Shown: piece after piece, positions 8,411 to 47,263 of the stretch
Layout of the letters: every line of letters starts with the position of its first letter
Position numbering within the stretch: position 1 is the stretch's first letter
Assembly (NCBI GenBank): GCA_024704765.1
Contig: JAKMXF010000357.1
Location: 82,678-146,677, forward strand
Direction of reading: 5' to 3'
Source of the DNA: Oopsacas minuta
Lineage: Eukaryota; Animalia; Porifera
DNA length: 64,000 bases
Notes under the pieces: generated by a model
Seen by the model: only the letters and a program-made list of their open reading frames with translations
Databases searched by the model: none
What the model was told of the DNA's origin: nothing
Program-made: the position numbers and the translations under genes

Positions 8411-9029
8411 CAGCGTTTCTTAACCTTTTCATACCTCAGCACCCCCTGTAGTCAGTCTTAGCACTTCAGCAGCCCTTACATGGAACTACAAGTATTACAG
8501 TGCCCCTCTGTAACAAGGATGAAATCAGACAAGAAATGCACTGTTTCATAATTGATTGTATTTACTTAGATTACTCCATTAAAAATCCAACTCAATCAGA
8601 AAGAAAATGTAACTTTAGATATCACGAACACCTAACTCACAAAAATACTTATATGGAATCCAGTTCCTTAGAACTGAACTGGTTTTACTTTACGCACAGT
8701 TTTATATTTCAGCTTATGGGTTCGTTTTAAATACCGATTTCCTTATATTGAAGTTCAGTTCCATGGAACTGGATTCCATACCAGTATAATTATTCCCTAT
8801 CACAAATCTGTGACAGAAAAGAACTCAAGTAAGTAACATAGAAAGAAAAATATAAGTTAAATACAACTAATTTATAGCCAGACAATACTATATGTAGTAA
8901 AGACAGCTGAATGTTTCGATATTTATCCTGAAGCATCTGCCAGCCTGAAATGTTATCTAGAACCTAAACAAAAACATCGTACAGCACATAGTAGAATCCT
9001 TATCCAGCACCCCAGGTTAAGAAACGCTA
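8411..9029. mobile_element. hAT (Buster/Charlie-type) MITE, 619 bp, just upstream of twinfilin
   Basis: TIRs CAGCGTTTCTTAACCT / AGGTTAAGAAACGCTA (15/16). Perfect 8-bp TSD CTCTATGG at 8403-8410 and 9030-9037. Confidence 0.92.
8652..8780. repeat. Small inverted-repeat unit nested in the hAT MITE
   Basis: 29-bp arms TATGGAATCCAGTTCC(T/A)T(A/G)GAACTGAACT at 8652-8680 and 8752-8780. Confidence 0.7.
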
Positions 9030-13980: not shown

Positions 13981-15360
13981 CACAGTGGGCTATTATTGCG
14001 AATTACTAGTATTAGGGTTTTACGCGTTCAATTTTAGAGATAGGCTTATAAAATACATTATTACTGTATAGTAAGTCGACTATTGCAGTTCTTTTGTTGA
14101 TTTCAATTTTGTTGTATCACATCAGGTTTTCAATATATGACGTAATCTTAATTACCATATACAGTAATACAGAAATCTAGATATACACTAAACTGAGATG
14201 TATTAAAAGAAATAGAATATGAATATATTATGGCTATGGTAACTGAAGAATAACTAAAATAAGAATATCTTACTGACGAATTAATGTTAAATGCAAGAAG
14301 AGTTCATCTATGGAATTTTGAAGGAAAGAATCTTAATTATCAATATTATTTGTAACGTTTTCACCTTGCCTGTTTTTTACACAATTCTTTTGATGGCCTA
14401 CTTGACCACAGGTGGAACAAATGATGATCCTTCTGAATTTTTCATTCAGAATTGGACAACCATAGATGTAGAGTCTCATTGCAACTTCACTTAACCCACT
14501 TAGAAAATCTGATCTCCTGCTTAAATGTGTTGAGAACTCTCGGATCAACTTATGTCCTTGTTCTAACCCTTCTTCAGAAAGACTACACAATCCTACCCTG
14601 TCATTTCTCTCAATTAACTCATGAGCATGAGCCAAGAATTTGTGGAGTGTATTGCTATTAGATACCCAGGGAAAGGTTTGTAAGATTAGTATGTAGGTTT
14701 CTTGACTTACACACGAAATCTGTCTACATCGACAACTTCATTACTATCAGCAACTCTGAGCAATGCAGATAGATTTCTGTGAATCTCTGTCAGAGCATCT
14801 CCATAAACATTGGTACAAACGATAAAGAGATCCTAAAACACTGTTTTTTATATGAAAAAAATGTTCTTGCCATGTTACCAGTGCTTGTGTTCCCACTTCC
14901 TCCTGGTTGGTGGAATAATAAGTTCGTAAGCACATGGATACGCTTGCATACTAAACCTCGATAATCTCACACCATTTGATCTTCAGTCCACTTGGACTTT
15001 CCTGCTGCAATTCGGTAGATGAGGTTCAAAAACCAATCTAAAATCCTTAGGTAAGAATGTAAAGGTGCTGCAGGAAATACATCAATTCTACTTGCAGGTT
15101 CGTGTGTAATTCCACACCGTTGCTTTGTATTGTAGCTCATCAGCTCTTTTCTATCAGAGGTTAACTGACCGATTGTCTCTTTGATATCCTCTATCGAACC
15201 ATCTAAAGGAAACCCGCAAACAACTTCGTAATGCTCTTGATATCACTTCGGGTTGCTTTGCAGGCAATACATGGCGCTCCTCCTTTACCTGTTATTGTTG
15301 CTAAGGTTTTTCCGTCAAACATTGAAGCTTTAACTTCCACTGGAACCTGACCATTTAGGT

Positions 15361-17685
15361 CAGGCTTGTCCAACCTTTTTTGTTCGCGGGCCAAATGAGG
15401 GCTTCTTTATCTACTTGTTGGCCGCACGACATTGGATATATCAAGGTAGCATGATGTTATTTATTTGGGGATGGCGTTAATACGGATTATTTCAGAATTG
15501 AAAAATCACTATATGTATTATTTAATTATAGTAAACTTTAATGATAAAGAACATATCTAATGGGATATCTGACTTTGTTTTTGTTTACACAAAGAGTCAA
15601 TATCTGCTCGTACACTTGATATCGCAATCCGTAATATTCCTGATAGATGAGTGTCTGTCAGGAGTGATCTAGACTTGCTTTTAACATTTTTCATCATTGA
15701 GAAAAGCTGTTCACAGCAATACGTGCTGCCAAATAAGGAAAGGAACCTAAGGGCGTGTTGCGATAAATTAGGAAATAGATCCGATGTAACATATTGACCA
15801 TAAAATGTCAGAAGGTCATGCTCTGCAAAAGCTCTCTTTCTCTCCGAGTTATTTTGTATTTCAATTAGTTCCAGTTGGAACATTTCAGGAGCATTAGTGG
15901 CATCAGTTCCAAACGGATCTGCAAACAACTCCATTTCATCGAATTTGTCACTAAAATCAGAAAATCTTAGTTTAAATTCATCGATTAAGCTGTTGATCAG
16001 TGCAGAATACTTATCATGATTCACTGTCTCACTTTTTCTTGAAGATAATGTTGAGAAATGTACCACCTTTTTCAAAATAAATTGTTGGTGGAATAATTGT
16101 AATTTGTTGATGAACGCTTTGACATGCTCATACAGGTTGTTAACGAATTGTTTTCTTCCTTGTAGTTTCAGATTTAAATCTGCGAGATACTTAGTTATGT
16201 CAACTAGAAATGCGAGATCATTCAACCACTGATCATCATCCAGAAAGCTCACATCCTTTCCCTTAATGGTCATGAATGTTTTTATTTCTTCAAGTAGTGA
16301 CCAGTATCTGGCTAGAGTGGACGCTCTGCTGAGCCAGCGAACTTGGCTAAAGTAAATAACATCGTTATAGTCTGATCCTATCTCTGCAAGAAACACTTGG
16401 AATTGTCTGTGATTGAGTCCCTTCGACCTTATGAAATTGACTGTATTGACGACATTTTCCATCACATGTTTCATATCTAAGGTTTTTGTACAAAGTTGTT
16501 CTTGATGAATAATGCAGTGGTATGCCATAACAGGAGAGGTCATTGATTTGAGCATAAGGCTAACAAAGCTTTATGCTTTCCTGTCATCGCAGGGGCTCCA
16601 TCGGTTGTTAAACCACTTAGTTTTTCATCTGCAAGTTTGAATTTCATAAACACATGTTTTACTACATTGAAAATATCTTGCCCAGTAGTTGTGCCTTTCA
16701 TTGGACATAAGTCGAGCAGTTCTTCGATTATTTCGAAATTTTCTGTGACACCACGTACAAAGATTGCCAGTTGAGCTGTGTCGCTAACATCGGTACTTTC
16801 ATCAAGGGCCAAGCTGTAAAATTTGCAAGCATTGAGTCGTTTAATTAGTGAAATTTCAATGTTGGATGATAAATCATCTACTCTTCTAGCAACAGTTTGA
16901 TGTGACAGACTGATGCTCTCTACTATCGACTTCTTATTTGGGCATGCCACAGATGTAAATATGTCTAAGCAGTCTTTTACAAATTCCCCTTCAGACAATG
17001 GTTTTCCACTCTTGGCTATCGCTTCTGTTATCAGAAAGCTGATCTTTGTTGCTGTCTCAGAACTTAATTTAACGGCTTTGAAGAAAGATTGTTGACTGTT
17101 GATGCTATCCTTCAACAGGTTCACCCGATCGATTCTCACCTGACCTGTAAGCGTGTCAAATGTATCTGCATGTTTAGTAGAGTAATGTCGTTTGATATTA
17201 TACTCTTTGAATACAGCTATCTTCTCCTGACATATCAAGCACAATAAGTATTCGTTGTGTTCTACGACGAAAAAATCTAATGTCCATGAGGATTTGAAAA
17301 CTCGACATTCACTATCAATTTTCCTTTTCTTTGCTTTAATCACGGGAGTTGACATATTTGTTTTGTAGTTATTTTAATATTGTTTAAGATGGTTTATTAT
17401 TTGGAATTTATATGAGCTGTTCGAGTTGAGAGAAACCCAGTTATGTGACAGATGATTACTCAATCAAAACTAAATTACAAAGTTATTTAAGGATTTTTAA
17501 GTTATTGAAATCACACTTTTCTGAAATTGGTTTCATTCAATTTGGTTTTGCAATATTGGGTTTCTCTTAATTGAGTTCGCTCAAATAGGTTTCACTCAAT
17601 TAAATATCGCCACCAACTGATAACAGTTCCCGAGCATGTTGGCGGGCCGGATTGTGGCCCGCTGGCCGTAGGTTGGACAAGCCTG
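15361..17685 (-). mobile_element. Full-length hAT (Buster/SPIN family) transposon, 2325 bp, nested in RAG1-like copy A
   Basis: Perfect 16-bp TIR CAGGCTTGTCCAACCT. Perfect 8-bp TSD ATTTAGGT at 15353-15360 and 17686-17693. Confidence 0.97.
15557..17355 (-). pseudogene. hAT transposase of about 600 aa, split by one frameshift near 16569
   Basis: ORFs 16540-17355 and 15557-16555 join as KHKGFVSLMLKS if one G is restored. Motifs: Zn finger CLIC..RHY..KH, LALDESTD, TTDGAPAM, HCIIH, RWLS, CCEQLFS. Confidence 0.93.
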
Positions 17686-41055: not shown

Positions 41056-41492
41056 TAAGGCATTAGTCAATTGTGTTAAACAAGATCACTATTCCGATCC
41101 AGATCTTAGCTGAAATTATGATCAGCAATCCCGATAAAGATCCTTATTTCTAAAACGATCGCGATTCCGATCGTTTGAGTACATTCATGATTTATATTTT
41201 TGATAGTTACGTCATTTCTTATGCCACAAGAATATAGGTGGAGAATCAACGCATTCTACGAACGTATATTACTGATTGTTGAACACAAATTTGGGACAAT
41301 TACTTAAGTATGCTAACGTAATGATAGTAGCATTCAAAGTATACAAAAATGACCGAAAATTTTCGTGCAAAAAGGATCGCAATCTTACATCTGATCCTTA
41401 ATGAAACAATGATCGCCGATCGTCGCTAGATCGTCAAAATAGTATCGCGATCGTGATCGAGCGATCAATGATGGTACGATCCTAATGCCCTA
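41056..41492. mobile_element. hAT-type MITE with GATC-rich subterminal repeats
   Basis: TIR TA(A/G)GGCATTAG (10/11). Perfect 8-bp TSD GACCCTAC at 41048-41055 and 41493-41500. Confidence 0.85.
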
Positions 41493-41635
41493 GACCCTAC
41501 CTAGGCATGACGGGATCCTAGTCAGGATCTGATGCACCAATTATGAACTTGAGTATCCAAACGTTTTTCAAATCACCGAAATTCTGAATGTATCATAAAT
41601 ATATTATCTTAATACCATATATTTAAAAATGAGTA

Positions 41636-41645
41636 GCGCATGCGC
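41636..41645. promoter_or_regulatory. NRF1-type palindrome GCGCATGCGC in the left inverted repeat
   Basis: Sequence GTAGCGCATGCGCTGC; 223 bp upstream of the ATG at 41869. Function is inferred. Confidence 0.6.
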
Positions 41646-41868
41646 TGCATTAATATATAATTGGAATTTTGGAAAAAAGTAGCCTCTCAAATTACATCCT
41701 ATTATAGTGTAATTAAATCCGCAGGTACTGATATTTAGTTTTGAGTTTTGTTACTTATTTCTACTTCCTTTATTAGCAAAATCCCTAAATATGTTTCCCA
41801 ATTAACTTTATACTTTACTCAATTAGTGTTTCCTCTTGATTTCCATTCTGTACCCTTGATTAGCCAAA

Positions 41869-43586
41869 ATGCCAACGATACCCAAATTGACAAAGTCTAA
41901 TGCTATAATGGTACTGACAGACATATTGTCTGAGTTTCGTTCAGTAACAGGTGAATATGCCGGAGCTGTATTTTCATGGCATGGAAAGCTTGGCTCTTTG
42001 GGTCCAGAGAAATTTCAAACCTATATCACTGGGAATAGCGATGAAATATCAAGAACTCTATTGACTAACCAAATATCTACAAGTACGTCAGCGTCATCAA
42101 AGCCTGTGCGTGATCACGAAATCCTCAAGCTATTAGATGGAGATATATCTGGCTATAATGTACAGGGACTGCGAAGACTTGTTTCTGCGATTATAGAAGT
42201 GTCAACTGGTAAGTCAACGGTGTGAATTTATATAATTATATGGGTCACTGATTTTATATCTCTGTATTTTAGGGAAAGGTATGTTTTTTTTGGAATGATC
42301 CTTCCCTCAAACCACCTTTTTGGCCCGAAAGAGTCCCTTTCGAAAACATAAAAAGCGCATGTAAGATTCATCTGCGTATGATAATAGAATCATATAAGAA
42401 TTAATCTATGAAAGCGCGAGTTTCAGCTCGCCCTCAATCTCAGAAGTCTCCAAGCTCTTCTCAAGCATCGCGACATGATATCTACCGTGACCGATCTAGA
42501 TCTCCTCTTGATTTCGCTAGAGATGTACTATACCAAGAGTCTGATGTAGATACTAGTGATGATTCCTTCGATGAGGTTTTTCAGCAACCCGTTATCACTT
42601 CGAACAAACCTATTTCAGATCCTCAAACACCCACCCCAACATCCAGTCTGGTGACATTACTCGGAGTTAAGCCATTGGATCCTATTCAAATAATCACTCC
42701 TCCCATTAGTTTAAATGAGAAAAACTTGTCAATTTCCGAATTGTCAAGTCGTAATACTTTTCTAACAGGCATCACCATTAATGCATTCTGTGTAAGTTTA
42801 TCATACATTGAAATTCAATCCGTTTTCTTAGCAAATATTCTCATACCATATATGTATTTGTAGACATTACTGAAGAAGAATTTCCCCCATTTACACGGAC
42901 TTCAGGACACTATTCTTTCCGAAGTGAGTTTCTCGGTTTAAATTTTTGAATTATAAATCAATATTTGATATTCAATTAATTATTAGAATAGTCAATTCGT
43001 GAAAGCTCCTCGTCCTAGTATACAGCTGCATCACGATGGCGCACTTCACTGGGTTTGCTCCAGTATTGATGTTAAAGGGCATGTAACTTTATATGATTCA
43101 CTATCTACTGGGAGAATATCTGGTGAATTAGCTGTGCAATTGGCATTTCTACATGGGAATGATGCTGATCATGAGCTGAAAGTCGCCCTTGCTCCTATTC
43201 AGCAGCAAAGAGGTGGGGCGGATTGTGGTTTATTTGCAGCTGCAGTCTGTTTGACAATAGCAACGGGAGGCAACCCAACCCAAGTATACTGGAAACAGTC
43301 AAGAATGAGATCTCACCTAACTGATTGTTTCAACAGCGAAATTTTAACACCCTTTCCTAAGATAGAAAGCATAGTATTACGATCTCGCCTGACTACAAAT
43401 CTAGGGACAGATTTAAAGATAAAGTTATGGTGTTTGTGTCATCTACCCAGTTGCGCGTCAAAAAATATGATTGAATGTCCCAAATGCCTTAAATGGTTCC
43501 ACAAACCATGTGTAGGACTTGAAGATATTGACAAAGATATCGATAACTTTTATTGTCACAATTGTCGTGAGTCTCCTAACATATAA
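41869..43586 (+). pseudogene. Four-exon gene of about 505 aa: NRF1/Ewg-like DNA-binding domain, S/P-rich linker, Ulp1-like cysteine protease, PHD finger
   Basis: Exons 41869-42208, 42273-42791, 42864-42923 and 42987-43586, all GT-AG and phase-consistent once one extra T in the T8 run (42284-42291) is removed. In-frame TAA at 42402-42404. Motifs: LRRLVSAIIEVSTGKGMFFWNDPSLKPPFWPERVPFENIKS; LLKKNFPHLHGLQDT; HWV, YDS, QQQRGGADCGLF; WCLC..MIECPKC..WFHKPC..FYCHNC. Confidence 0.85.
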
Positions 43587-43593
43587 ACTATTT

Positions 43594-46500
43594 TCATATA
43601 TTATTATTTTGTGATAGAATATGTGGATTCAAACATGCTAGAAAATATCTTGTAGTGAAGAATACATTATCAATACGCATGTATGCGATTTGTGTTGCTA
43701 TCCTTGTTAGTGATGAAAACAACTGCTCGCAAATTTGTGAGTTTAGCTTTTTCATCTCGTCAGTCTGAATTGATCTCAAAGAATAAGAGGGATTGCACTT
43801 GTGGTTTGTAGAATGGAATCGATTAATCAGAAATGTTGTCCTACGAAATACTTTGGGGTCCCTATATAAAAAATCACAAATAAATTTCTATTTGAAACCT
43901 CGGCTAATTATCATTTATACCCAATTTGTTATGTGCACTTACCTTTTCATACATGTTTTGTGTAAGTTGCAAGCATTATCGTAGATGATCACTTTTGGCT
44001 GTTCTCTGAATATGGTCATTAACAGATTATAAATTACAACTGTAGATTCGTGTTGTCTGAGGATTTGGAAACCATAACAAATCCTGTGTTTACAAGCGAT
44101 TGCTACTATTCCGGGGGGAAACCTTTTGTGAGTTGGAAACTTTTTGTGACACGGTTCAGCTGACTCAACTTCTAGATTTTCGTATACTGGCAACCTGTAC
44201 AATTATAGTAGAATGGTAAAATATAAAAAAAGTTGAATAGCAATTAGTATTTTCAGTATAAACACAATTACAAGTTTGAACTTATATGTAGTTTGTTGTG
44301 AATGCTGGGAAATAATTGTAATAGTTTTCGCTTTGTGGAGAATATTCCACTAATTTTCTTGACGCTCTACTAAATAAACTCTCTATTTGTGTCAGGATTC
44401 TTTTCAACAGCGGGAAAACTTTGAGATATAAAGTGACAAACCCTGTGCATGTGATGTCTTCATTAGGTTTGATAGAATTGAATAAGATATCTAATGTATA
44501 CATCTTCTGATATATTGAATTTAAGGAATCTTCACTTGCTGATTTTCCATTGACAAGAAGAGCTATTGCTTTTCGTTCATTCGATTCCAGCAGAGAGAAT
44601 TGGAATACTCCTGATATTGGATCTGTATGGCAAAGGAGTTTTATGACTTTCTTAACGTGTATATATTCTTCACTTATAGCCACTAAATTTCTGTCCTAAT
44701 GGAACTAAATAAAATATAATCAGCCATTTCTTTATGAGTAGACTTCAATAGGTCTTTTAGCGTATTTTCTGTCAAACCTTCAGAACAGTATTTAAGGAGT
44801 TGTTTTCTAATTGCTGTGTCGGGGATAAAAACACGATCTGAAAATGGGATCATAGGGTATTGCTGATCCTGATCGAATTTTGCATCCACTTCTAGCACCG
44901 ATTTCATTGTTCCCATCGCTATGCCATCTAAAATTATCACATCGGGATGATCTTTACACTTTGACATATGTAGTTCGAGTCATAATCTATGTCTACTGTT
45001 CTTAGATAGGCGTTCCATGCCTGATAAACAATGTGATAATGGAATGTATTCGTTCTACCCATTCTGATAAGCTTCCTGTTCTTGGCACTAAAAAGTAAAA
45101 CGAAGAATTAGATTGTATATATAGGAATTTTAATTTATCAAGAATATGATTTTAAACAATACATACCTCAAGTAACCGTACAAAGTATTTCTAGACATGG
45201 TCATTAACTCGCTATAATCATATAACAAACTGTAATGAACAAAGTACTTGTTGTTGATGTTTAACAGTAAACTGTTCTGACCTTCGAAGACTGCCAAGCA
45301 ATTGCAAGGTCCACTGCATCTTGAACTGTAAACTATATACTTACAATATAATTACTGAGTTACTAAGCACAGGCAAATTTAAGGAGGGAGTAAATTGGGA
45401 CGAGTTCATTGCAATCGAATGAACAATCTTATATGCAAACCAAATATTTATTGAAATTCCTTTATAATTGCAAAGACTTGTTTTCAACGGCTAAATACGT
45501 AGGATAACCCACCATACTAAATTAAAATTGCGACCGAGCAAATGGTTCATTGATGATAAATATATAACTTTGTAATCTTTGAATTCATTAATATCATTTT
45601 CTAAATAGATAACTATTCCAACCTTCTCTAGTTTAAGCTTCTCCTCTTCACTGAATTTGAAACCATAGTCACATAATTCCTTTTCAGGATACATATTTAA
45701 AGGTAAATTGATGCCATGGCAGAGCTAGTGGTTGTAAATTGCTATTTGGCTTTCATCTAAATTGAATGGTATTACTCTTGTTGATATCGTGTTATATTCA
45801 AACTGTTTCTGTGTATTTGATCCAGTATTTTCGAGAATATTATGGAGTCTAGAATGTTGTTTGCACTTTGAAGAACAAGAACAACATAACCACCTATCAT
45901 TATTCAATTGGAAGTTGTGAAAAGTATCATCTGTCAACGGAAAGATATCTTTAGGACTTGGGGAATAATATATTATATCTTCTAGAATGTTTGCTTCACA
46001 AACTTGCAAACAATCATTTTGCGAACAGAGTTCAAATGCTTGATAATGAGAACAAGTATCACTATAACAATTGGCGCATAGATTGCTGTTTGTTTCAATT
46101 ATGATTTCCCTTTTGTTTAGTACAACGGTTCCTTGAAATACATAATGTTTAGTTTTGGTAGTGAGAATAGTAAATGTACAGTAGACTCCGATTAATAGGG
46201 TCACTTAGGACCAAGCCATTTGACCCGATTAACCGAAATAAATGTGTTGGGCCCTACGAACCGGAGCAGAGAGACAAACATGCTAACAGACAACAATAAT
46301 AGTGATAATAACGTATATTTACCTCGTGAGTGATCATAATCTGCAATTATAACATATTCACTATCGTCTAACTTATGTATGTGAGACTTCAATTATCAAT
46401 AGTTTTACATACTGGTCAATTATAGGCATTTCTACTTGTTTCATTTCTGGTTCTGAGAAGCAATCAGGTTGACACTGACTATGCGAAAATTATATTGAAT

Positions 46501-46731
46501 CAACAAGCAACTAAAGTTTGCTTGAAAGCATAAGGAATTAAGAATATAAGTATCACCTGGTTTTGACCATGTTGGCACATCTGATTCTATCAATTTAAAT
46601 GATTCACCTTCTGATAGGCATACTTTGTCGATGTCTAATGTGATGAAGCTGATATCTTCTTTCTCCGAGATTTTTCGTTTTTTTGGGTATATATTATCAG
46701 ATCCAGTTTGTGAAGTTACTTTTTCAGCCAT
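43594..46731 (-). pseudogene. Multi-exon CxC/KDZ (HMGXB3-like) transposase with several lesions
   Basis: ATG at 46731, NLS PKKRK, SWIM-like CANC..CSH and CSC..C..H, CNC..FEGQNSLLLN, C.KC..HPDVIILDG, CKHRICYGF..ES, IYDNACNLH, RDP..F..INRFH..NHKC, NSQICEQ. The last two exons, 43943-44194 and 43594-43861, join across a GT-AG intron; 5' exon structure is only partly resolved. Confidence 0.85.
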
Positions 46732-46932
46732 TTCCAAAATGAAATTATCTAACGAATGATACAAATTTATATATCTACTTCTATCATTATAAATGCACCA
46801 GCATTCCAATTACCGCTTGTCGTAATGTGGTTTCGAAACTTATCTAATCACATTCAATTCAGCAGTTTGGGTAACTATGGTTGAAATGATAACGCGTATC
46901 TATAAATATGACTTACCAATAATCCTAATGTA

Positions 46933-46942
46933 GCGCATGCGC
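46933..46942. promoter_or_regulatory. NRF1-type palindrome GCGCATGCGC in the right inverted repeat (within the 16-bp perfect palindrome GTAGCGCATGCGCTAC, 46930-46945)
   Basis: Lies between the divergent starts of the transposase (46731, minus) and COPS2 (47264, plus). Function is inferred. Confidence 0.6.
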
Positions 46943-47263
46943 TACTCACTTTTAAATACCTCCTTAATACATATATACCTACGTTCAATTAGCAATTCTC
47001 AGTAATACCTTTAGGCAATAAATAATTAATTTTCAAAGCTAGAATCTTATTCAATTGTTAGGTGAACCAGAAATTGTTTTTACCCAAGAATATTTATGTA
47101 GGCAATTAAGCATGTACCGGATTCTGGATCCGGATCCGATCTGCTTGATCCGTCCAACCCGTATCCTACCGGATCCAAAAATGATCTGGTGCATGCCTAA
47201 CCCTGCCAGTGCATGTATTATCCTCTTTGATTTATATTGTGTGTGGTTTTATAGTAGATAATT

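Follow-up and report, generated by a model that had tools for sequence, protein, structure and literature searches.

Among the transposons of the KDZ superfamily, Zisupton proper is defined by a SWIM finger and a Ulp1 protease that both lie within the transposase protein, and Bohne et al. reportedly associated a Ulp1-type protease with Zisupton in 2012; to our knowledge, the transposition mechanism of KDZ elements has not been studied. Target-site duplications (TSDs) that are 8 bp long, together with terminal inverted repeats (TIRs), have been reported for Zisupton (PMC12730594) and for the KDZ1 element of Cryptococcus (PMC11343200). KDZ1 is 10.9 kb long, encodes a transposase with KDZ, CxC4 and SWIM domains and has, in addition, two genes whose function is unknown (PMC11343200), TET/JBP genes occur in Dileera elements (PMC12730594) and, in Harbinger, two-protein lineages have been described (PMC12730594). 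Here we report on an element of 5,347 bp from the sponge Oopsacas minuta, in which a KDZ transposase gene stands beside a convergent gene for an NRF1-like protein, hereafter the partner. The element occupies positions 41616–46962 of the stretch that was analysed, 64,000 nucleotides of contig JAKMXF010000357.1 (assembly GCA_024704765.1, positions 82,678 to 146,677 of the forward strand), which we call the window; the surrounding region is eukaryotic DNA with introns and a G+C content of 35%.

NRF1 has a major place among the transcription factors of animals, its sites are typical of CpG-rich promoters, and its DNA-binding fold, with a novel binding mode, is said to have been described in 2023; we know of no evolutionary source for this protein. 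The base-contacting residues of NRF1 are R206, N242 and R244, the outermost G of the site being contacted by Asn242 in the NRF1-DNA crystal structure 8k4l, and SRF has the fold that comes closest to that of the NRF1 dimerisation domain (PMC10810270). From the sequence comparisons described below, we hold it to be rather probable that the element represents an autonomous two-gene KDZ (Zisupton-like) family of hexactinellids, of the cut-and-paste type, in which the NRF1-like partner binds the ends at the palindrome GCGCATGCGC and aids the transposase. An earlier note on this DNA had offered an interpretation of this kind, which the present analysis supports in every part accessible to computation, and none of the outcomes that the note had named as refuting it was observed; as for the role of the partner, in end recognition or in autoregulation, and for the direction of the relation between NRF1 and the transposon, we infer from the comparisons.

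Ends of the Element and Their Palindrome

The element is bounded on both sides by a TSD and a TIR, as previously read. The TSD is a perfect 8/8 repeat of CTTAATAC, whose left copy (41608–41615) and right copy (46963–46970) lie directly outside the termini at 41616 and 46962, and the TIR arms (41620–41652 and 46926–46958) are 33 nt long with 2 mismatches. The left end (41616–41652, plus strand) is made of CATA followed by the TIR arm, and the right end (46926–46962, minus strand) of the TIR arm followed by a terminal CCTC. These outermost 4 nt are not complementary to each other, and they are assigned to the element because they are conserved in other families. At the left end, the contigs of other copies part from the window just upstream of CATATATTT (loose ends at 41626); neither an empty paralogous site nor a second copy of the joined flanks was found within the 64-kb window. 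Both inverted repeats contain the NRF1 motif that the earlier note had pointed out, GCGCATGCGC, the palindromic NRF1 consensus, at 41636–41645 on the left and at 46933–46942 on the right, each copy starting 20 nt inside its terminus. These are the two occurrences of the motif in the whole window, to be compared with about 0.006 expected from the base composition.

Contigs of five more ENA assemblies (L002, L003, L004, L005 and L011) were added to the comparison; L001 is cut by the contig end, L006–L008 are degraded or without recognisable ends, and the P0094/P0054 family of O. minuta, which passes the Pfam threshold given below, was left out of the comparison of the ends. In all five contigs partner exon 1, exon 2 and exon 4 are followed by the convergent KDZ gene, and the protein identity of the five families is 27–70% and ranges, taken by exon and against the window, from 27 to 86%. 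The left termini of L003, L004, L005 and L011 read CATA or CATG followed by T-ATT(T/A)AAAAG, and the right ones GAG(G/C) followed by the same motif; the terminal motif CATA-TATTTAAAAG is kept in these families. TSDs of 8/8 flank the elements of L004 (CTTTTCCA) and L011 (GGAAAAAG), the one of L003 is 7/8 and that of L005 is ambiguous. In five further families the same ends enclose both genes, which are co-mobilised: the other copies whose search had been proposed, in L002–L005 and L011, keep the two genes together with the same termini.

The motif GCGCATGCGC is present in four of these families (L002–L005) and there, as in the window, it is confined to the element ends. In the window and in L003–L005, the families carrying it with both termini mapped, it starts 20 nt inside both ends; the 6-nt spacer that precedes it varies among families, the offset being unchanged. 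On one end, in the related families, the motif often occurs in tandem, with three or four repeats at a period of 21–23 bp. Among the families with mapped ends L011 diverges most; the layout, the termini, the 20-nt offset and the TSD are all kept, and the motif present is CCGCATGCGG, repeated with a 21-bp period, twice on the left and four times on the right, starting 20 nt in. The protein of L011 has Cys at the position of N242, which is Asn in all the seven families with GCGCATGCGC or with unmapped ends. The change of the site and of residue 242 in L011 falls exactly where the putative NRF1-like binding mode of the partner predicts it.

It could be supposed that the palindromes are promoter elements read by the NRF1 of the host, with the NRF1-like domain of the element competing with the host factor or mimicking it, for example. 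In fact, one site lies upstream of each of the two convergent genes, about 230 bp from the partner ATG and about 190 bp from the transposase ATG, the motif agrees exactly with the consensus for a factor of the host type (PMC10810270) and unmethylated retrotransposons are reported to be activated by NRF1 (PMC12420836). However, an offset of 20 nt from the cleaved terminus, fixed in five families despite the differences in the spacer, is unexpected for a promoter, and the site of L011 has changed together with the contacting residue of the element's own protein; we consider a reading of the sites by host NRF1 quite unlikely. The same change in L011 bears on another possibility, namely that the palindrome is bound by the KDZ transposase itself, as transposases commonly bind their own TIRs, and that its likeness to the NRF1 consensus is a coincidence. 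This would need an exact 10-bp match, in four families, to the consensus of a domain encoded by the neighbouring gene, and it appears very improbable.

Relationship of the Partner to NRF1

The spliced N-terminus of the partner reads STGKGMFFWNDPSLKPPFWPERVPFENIKS, as had been proposed, once one T is removed from positions 42284–42291, and the NRF1 string to which it had been aligned agrees with the 8k4l sequence given by the PDB search. A 37-aa piece of the window (42291–42401) has Nrf1_DNA-bind (PF10491) as its sole Pfam match (17.4 bits, E 0.004) and NRF1 (8k3d and 8k4l) as its top PDB matches; with a gathering cut-off of 23.5 bits, such a score gives the window copy membership of PF10491 only through its family. 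P0054, which belongs to a second family and is annotated in O. minuta, 42% identical to the window in exon 1, scores 25.4 bits, or 27.7 bits with residues 1–160, over profile positions 87–178, and the automatic naming of UniProt flags an NRF1 domain in it. Its full-length sister P0094 (493 aa), in which the NRF1-like module and a PHD finger are both present, reaches 23.0 bits and P0095 22.5 bits. In the opposite direction, a profile of the DNA-binding domain (DBD) region, named A3 and built from 29 rows of transposon proteins, found 8k3d (E 6e-8) and 8k4l (E 2.5e-7) among the PDB sequences, the next match, at 0.13, being unrelated. The profile has little depth in its exon-2 half, because the homologue search with the open reading frame (ORF) of exon 2 gave only 6 proteins.

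The AlphaFold (AF2) model of residues 1–160 of P0054 (pLDDT 84.7) had NRF1 chains as its top three matches in Foldseek, and a search of the AlphaFold DB with the same model gave NRF1 and Erect wing proteins first. With VIA-align, model residues 4–154 matched NRF1 106–275 with a Z of 8.7, and the DBD with a Z of 8.0 and a root-mean-square deviation of 2.7 Å over 78 residues. The MADS proteins SRF and MCM1 came next, with Z about 6, on model residues 1–65, and these matches on the N-terminal part mirror the published likeness between the folds of NRF1 and SRF. As for the base-contacting positions, the LR of partner exon 1 aligns to L205-R206 of NRF1, and at least 90% of 32 homologues have Arg in the R206 column. 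That the N-terminus of the partner is a true homologue of NRF1 is supported by the Pfam threshold passed by a relative (25.4 bits for P0054 against 23.5), by the reciprocal profile and by the predicted fold.

Below NRF1, the fold and feature searches with P0054 1–160 gave three kinds of weak match, with E about 0.1, and a cluster of 210-aa mollusc 'hypothetical proteins' in the Atlas reached 0.90 by features against the same model. Such weak matches, which include structural ones to fungal proteins associated with KDZ, are possibly leads to a wider superfamily, which could itself be linked to transposons.

The Two Convergent Genes and the Proposed Role of the Partner

The convergent plus-strand gene indicated in the earlier note is composed of four exons between 41869 and 43586 and encodes a protein of about 500 aa, in which residues 1–155 form the NRF1-like module and are followed by a Ulp1/SUMO-type protease and by a PHD finger; the nearest named proteins are those of Oopsacas minuta. 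Exon 1 (41869–42208), assigned by its ORF, a GT donor at 42209, its homologues and the predicted fold, would encode the NRF1-like dimerisation domain and the first DBD helix, whereas exon 2 (42273–42791), assigned by the Pfam and PDB matches, covers the region of the NRF1 linker2, the last helices (WNDPSLKPPFWPERVPFENIKS...) and a low-complexity linker. Exon 3 (42864–42923) has 20 codons and is placed by a joint in run X4 and by agreement with P0020 and P0040. Exon 4 (42987–43586) encodes the Ulp1/C48 core, with the motifs HW, YDS, QQQ and DCG, and the C-terminal PHD finger, as recognised by Pfam (Peptidase_C48, E 1e-3; PHD, E 6e-5). The joint of intron 2 (42791>42864, GT..AG) is found in the contigs of run X4, and the remaining junctions match the annotated O. 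minuta paralogues P0020, P0023 and P0040. Relative to the protein, the transposon intron lies between S-x-G and the Trp of linker2. The homologues of exon 1 form 49 clusters at 50% identity and those of exon 4 are 45 proteins; among 20 homologues YDS, DCG and the Cys/Trp/His zinc ligands of the PHD finger are invariant or nearly so. The conserved catalytic residues of Ulp1 and the ING-like signature of the PHD finger (W-C-x-C ... W-F-H) suggest SUMO-related and chromatin-reading roles.

The KDZ transposase gene (43594–46731, minus strand) is multi-exon, with a Cys-rich N-terminal region (Cys-rich stretch at 45728–46204), and its pieces contain the ILDG, YDNAC and NSQICEQ motifs by which it had first been recognised. 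Two adjacent pieces match the Pfam KDZ profile (PF18758) colinearly, at profile positions 76–135 (19.8 bits) and 145–202 (22.1 bits); each of them alone is below the cut-off of 26.6 bits, and the sum of both exceeds it. Paired KDZ matches of this kind recur in four other families, L002–L005. In Pfam, no match to CxC was obtained with the window pieces at E up to 1, and none to SWIM or C48 with any minus-strand piece. Two GT..AG joints of this gene (45087>45167 and 46130>46322, minus strand) are also present in run X4, whose contigs include, in a single run, spliced forms of both genes with the joints on the correct strand. A further X4 contig of low depth links 46738 to 46913 and runs on for at least 34 nt into the right TIR, so that some transposase-strand molecules, at least, include the NRF1 site; the joint could stem from an intron in the 5′ untranslated region, transcription then starting further upstream, from read-through or from a deletion copy.

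Since NRF1 is a transcription factor, the partner might bind the sites as an autoregulator only, the Cys-rich domains of the transposase recognising the TATTTAAAAG terminus for cleavage. Conservation of the terminal 14 nt (CATA-TATTTAAAAG) is separate from that of the NRF1 site, and the transposase could have its own site there. On the other hand, no activation domain is recognisable in the partner, which has the protease and the PHD finger there instead, and the fixed distance from the terminus, together with the tandem arrays, resembles the subterminal sites of transposition co-factors, known in En/Spm, Ac and Harbinger. In favour of a role confined to autoregulation, a part in the recognition of DNA or chromatin has been suggested for the CxC domains found in KDZ transposases (PMC12062965, which cites Iyer et al. 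2014); taken together, we regard autoregulation alone as unlikely.

In the reading that we prefer, with the partner as an end-binding subunit, the partner would dimerise via its MADS-like domain, and the dimer would bind the palindromic GCGCATGCGC at the fixed 20 nt inside both termini, a binding that would mark the ends and recruit, or position, the KDZ transposase. The partner would probably also drive or tune the transcription of both genes, because the sites lie about 190–230 bp upstream of each start codon. The fixed distance from the terminus and the arrays at about two helical turns argue for a role in a transposition complex over one in the promoter alone. Both the binding of the partner to the ends and its part in transposition are what we infer from sequence.

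Several points weigh against this reading. The sites are in likely promoter regions, where a role in transcription only, or use by host NRF1, would give the same conservation. The co-variation of the site and residue 242 comes from one family, L011, and R244 is not conserved, its column holding Lys in five families and Thr, Cys or Ser, then Lys, in three. The fragment of the window copy is itself below the PF10491 cut-off. For exon 1, neither the sequence by itself nor a profile of 32 rows matched NRF1 in Pfam or PDB, and an ESM-Atlas feature search with exon 1 returned noise only; the dimerisation part is linked to NRF1 only by its predicted fold. Finally, run X4 is taken to be RNA only from its joints.

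Decay of the Window Copy

The window element is a dead member of a multi-copy family. The partner frameshift allowed for in the earlier note is present, as exon 2 carries a +1 frameshift caused by an extra T in a run of eight T (42284–42291), and this T, at 42284, is missing from most family contigs, with nearly all the contig depth, in the same sample. Beyond this, we found an in-frame TAA in partner exon 2 (42402–42404), where P0040 and P0020 have Tyr, and, in the transposase gene, 1–2-bp indels with respect to the contig majority at 44687, 44962, 45117, 46393, 46478 and 46488. The frameshift and the stop in the partner, with the indels in the transposase, make the copy dead. An assembly error as the cause of the frameshift was considered and is disfavoured, and the indels are read as real decay, because most of the differing indels are outside homopolymers; for any one copy, contigs cannot settle between decay and assembly error.

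Surroundings of the Elements

Short motifs containing GATC (gatcgtcg.., ggatccggatccgatc..) are abundant in both flanks of the window element, at 41400–41540 and 47090–47200, and pieces such as ggcatg and gatcc are common to the two flanks; the element may be inserted inside another repeat. In L011, nested long hairpins with arms of 73–94 nt (14877–15409) adjoin the right end of the element, and an inverted repeat of 34 nt (8715–8748 and 15401–15434, 97%) brackets the KDZ element from outside, which suggests that it lies inside or beside another element with TIRs.

The most divergent exon-1-like ORFs, those of the P0078 family (27% identity), were found as inverted duplicates at L009:3182–5568 and L010:8905–10940, where they adjoin ORFs of the Tc1/mariner type (HTH_32 and DDE_3). 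The KDZ gene, the exon-2-like DBD piece and GCGCATGCGC are all absent from these two loci. It may be that a further transposon superfamily makes use of the NRF1-like dimerisation module; alternatively, L009 and L010 may be nested insertions. Other transposon genes are dense near L002:1–683, L004:40–1095, L005:1970–3634 and L011:4781–6495 and include MULE, hAT dimerisation domain, FAM200/ZBED5-like, THAP and RVT_1 genes; these neighbourhoods are repeat-rich regions of the host genomes.

Origin and Significance

Two directions can be considered for the relation between NRF1 and the transposon. In the first, the NRF1/Ewg module and GCGCATGCGC would have begun as the end-binding subunit of a KDZ element and as its end sequence, so that metazoan NRF1 would be a domesticated transposon protein and the sponge elements survivors of an ancestral mobile system; we put this forward tentatively, as a possible though doubtful origin. 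If domestication occurred, part of the genomic repertoire of NRF1 sites would likewise possibly derive from transposons. The reverse is possible, namely that the transposon captured the NRF1 of a host and evolved matching ends. The element offers, therefore, either a candidate answer to the origin of NRF1 or an example of host-factor capture with the ends rebuilt to match.

The family provides a concrete, testable system for end recognition by KDZ transposons and, with Asn facing GCGCATGCGC and Cys facing CCGCATGCGG, a natural specificity variant for recognition of the NRF1 type. Binding of NRF1 is blocked by CpG methylation, and if this holds here, the activity of the transposon would be coupled directly to the methylation of its ends by the host.

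Comparison with Known Systems

In the searchable literature we found no description of transposon ends that bear cognate sites for an accessory protein of the NRF1 type, and the earlier remark that no description of such an arrangement was known stands within this scope. By its transposase domain, TSD and TIRs the element belongs to the KDZ superfamily (Zisupton of fish; Kyakuja, Dileera and Zisupton of fungi; KDZ1 of Cryptococcus), with which it has in common the KDZ domain, 8-bp TSDs and TIRs, but it does not have the architecture of Zisupton proper. Here the convergent gene, and not that of the transposase, encodes the Ulp1 protease, in fusion with the NRF1-like module and the PHD finger, SWIM was not detected, the TIRs are short (33 nt) with the palindrome of a transcription factor at a fixed offset, and the host is a sponge.

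With NRF1, Erect wing and P3A2 (PF10491; 8k4l and 8k3d) the partner is predicted to share a MADS-like dimerisation domain, a linker, a three-helix DBD and a long loop that inserts into the groove; the positions L-R (R206), W224, KP, WP and N242 (Cys in L011) are kept, and the putative target, GCGCATGCGC, is the palindrome of NRF1. Unlike host NRF1, the transposon protein is multi-copy and, in six families, is enclosed by TIRs and TSDs; in place of a transactivation region, its C-terminal half has a C48 protease and a PHD finger, R244 is usually Lys, and the dimerisation part is too divergent for detection by sequence. The possibility that the partner is the host NRF1 orthologue was examined and ruled out by its many copies within TIRs and TSDs and by its protease and PHD C-terminus.

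PIF/Harbinger elements, in which the transposase superfamily and the DNA-binding fold are unrelated to those described here and the TSD is 3 bp, show a likeness of working and not of membership: as proposed for the sponge element, labour is divided between a transposase gene and a separate DNA-binding protein, which in Harbinger is of the Myb/SANT type and recognises the element ends.

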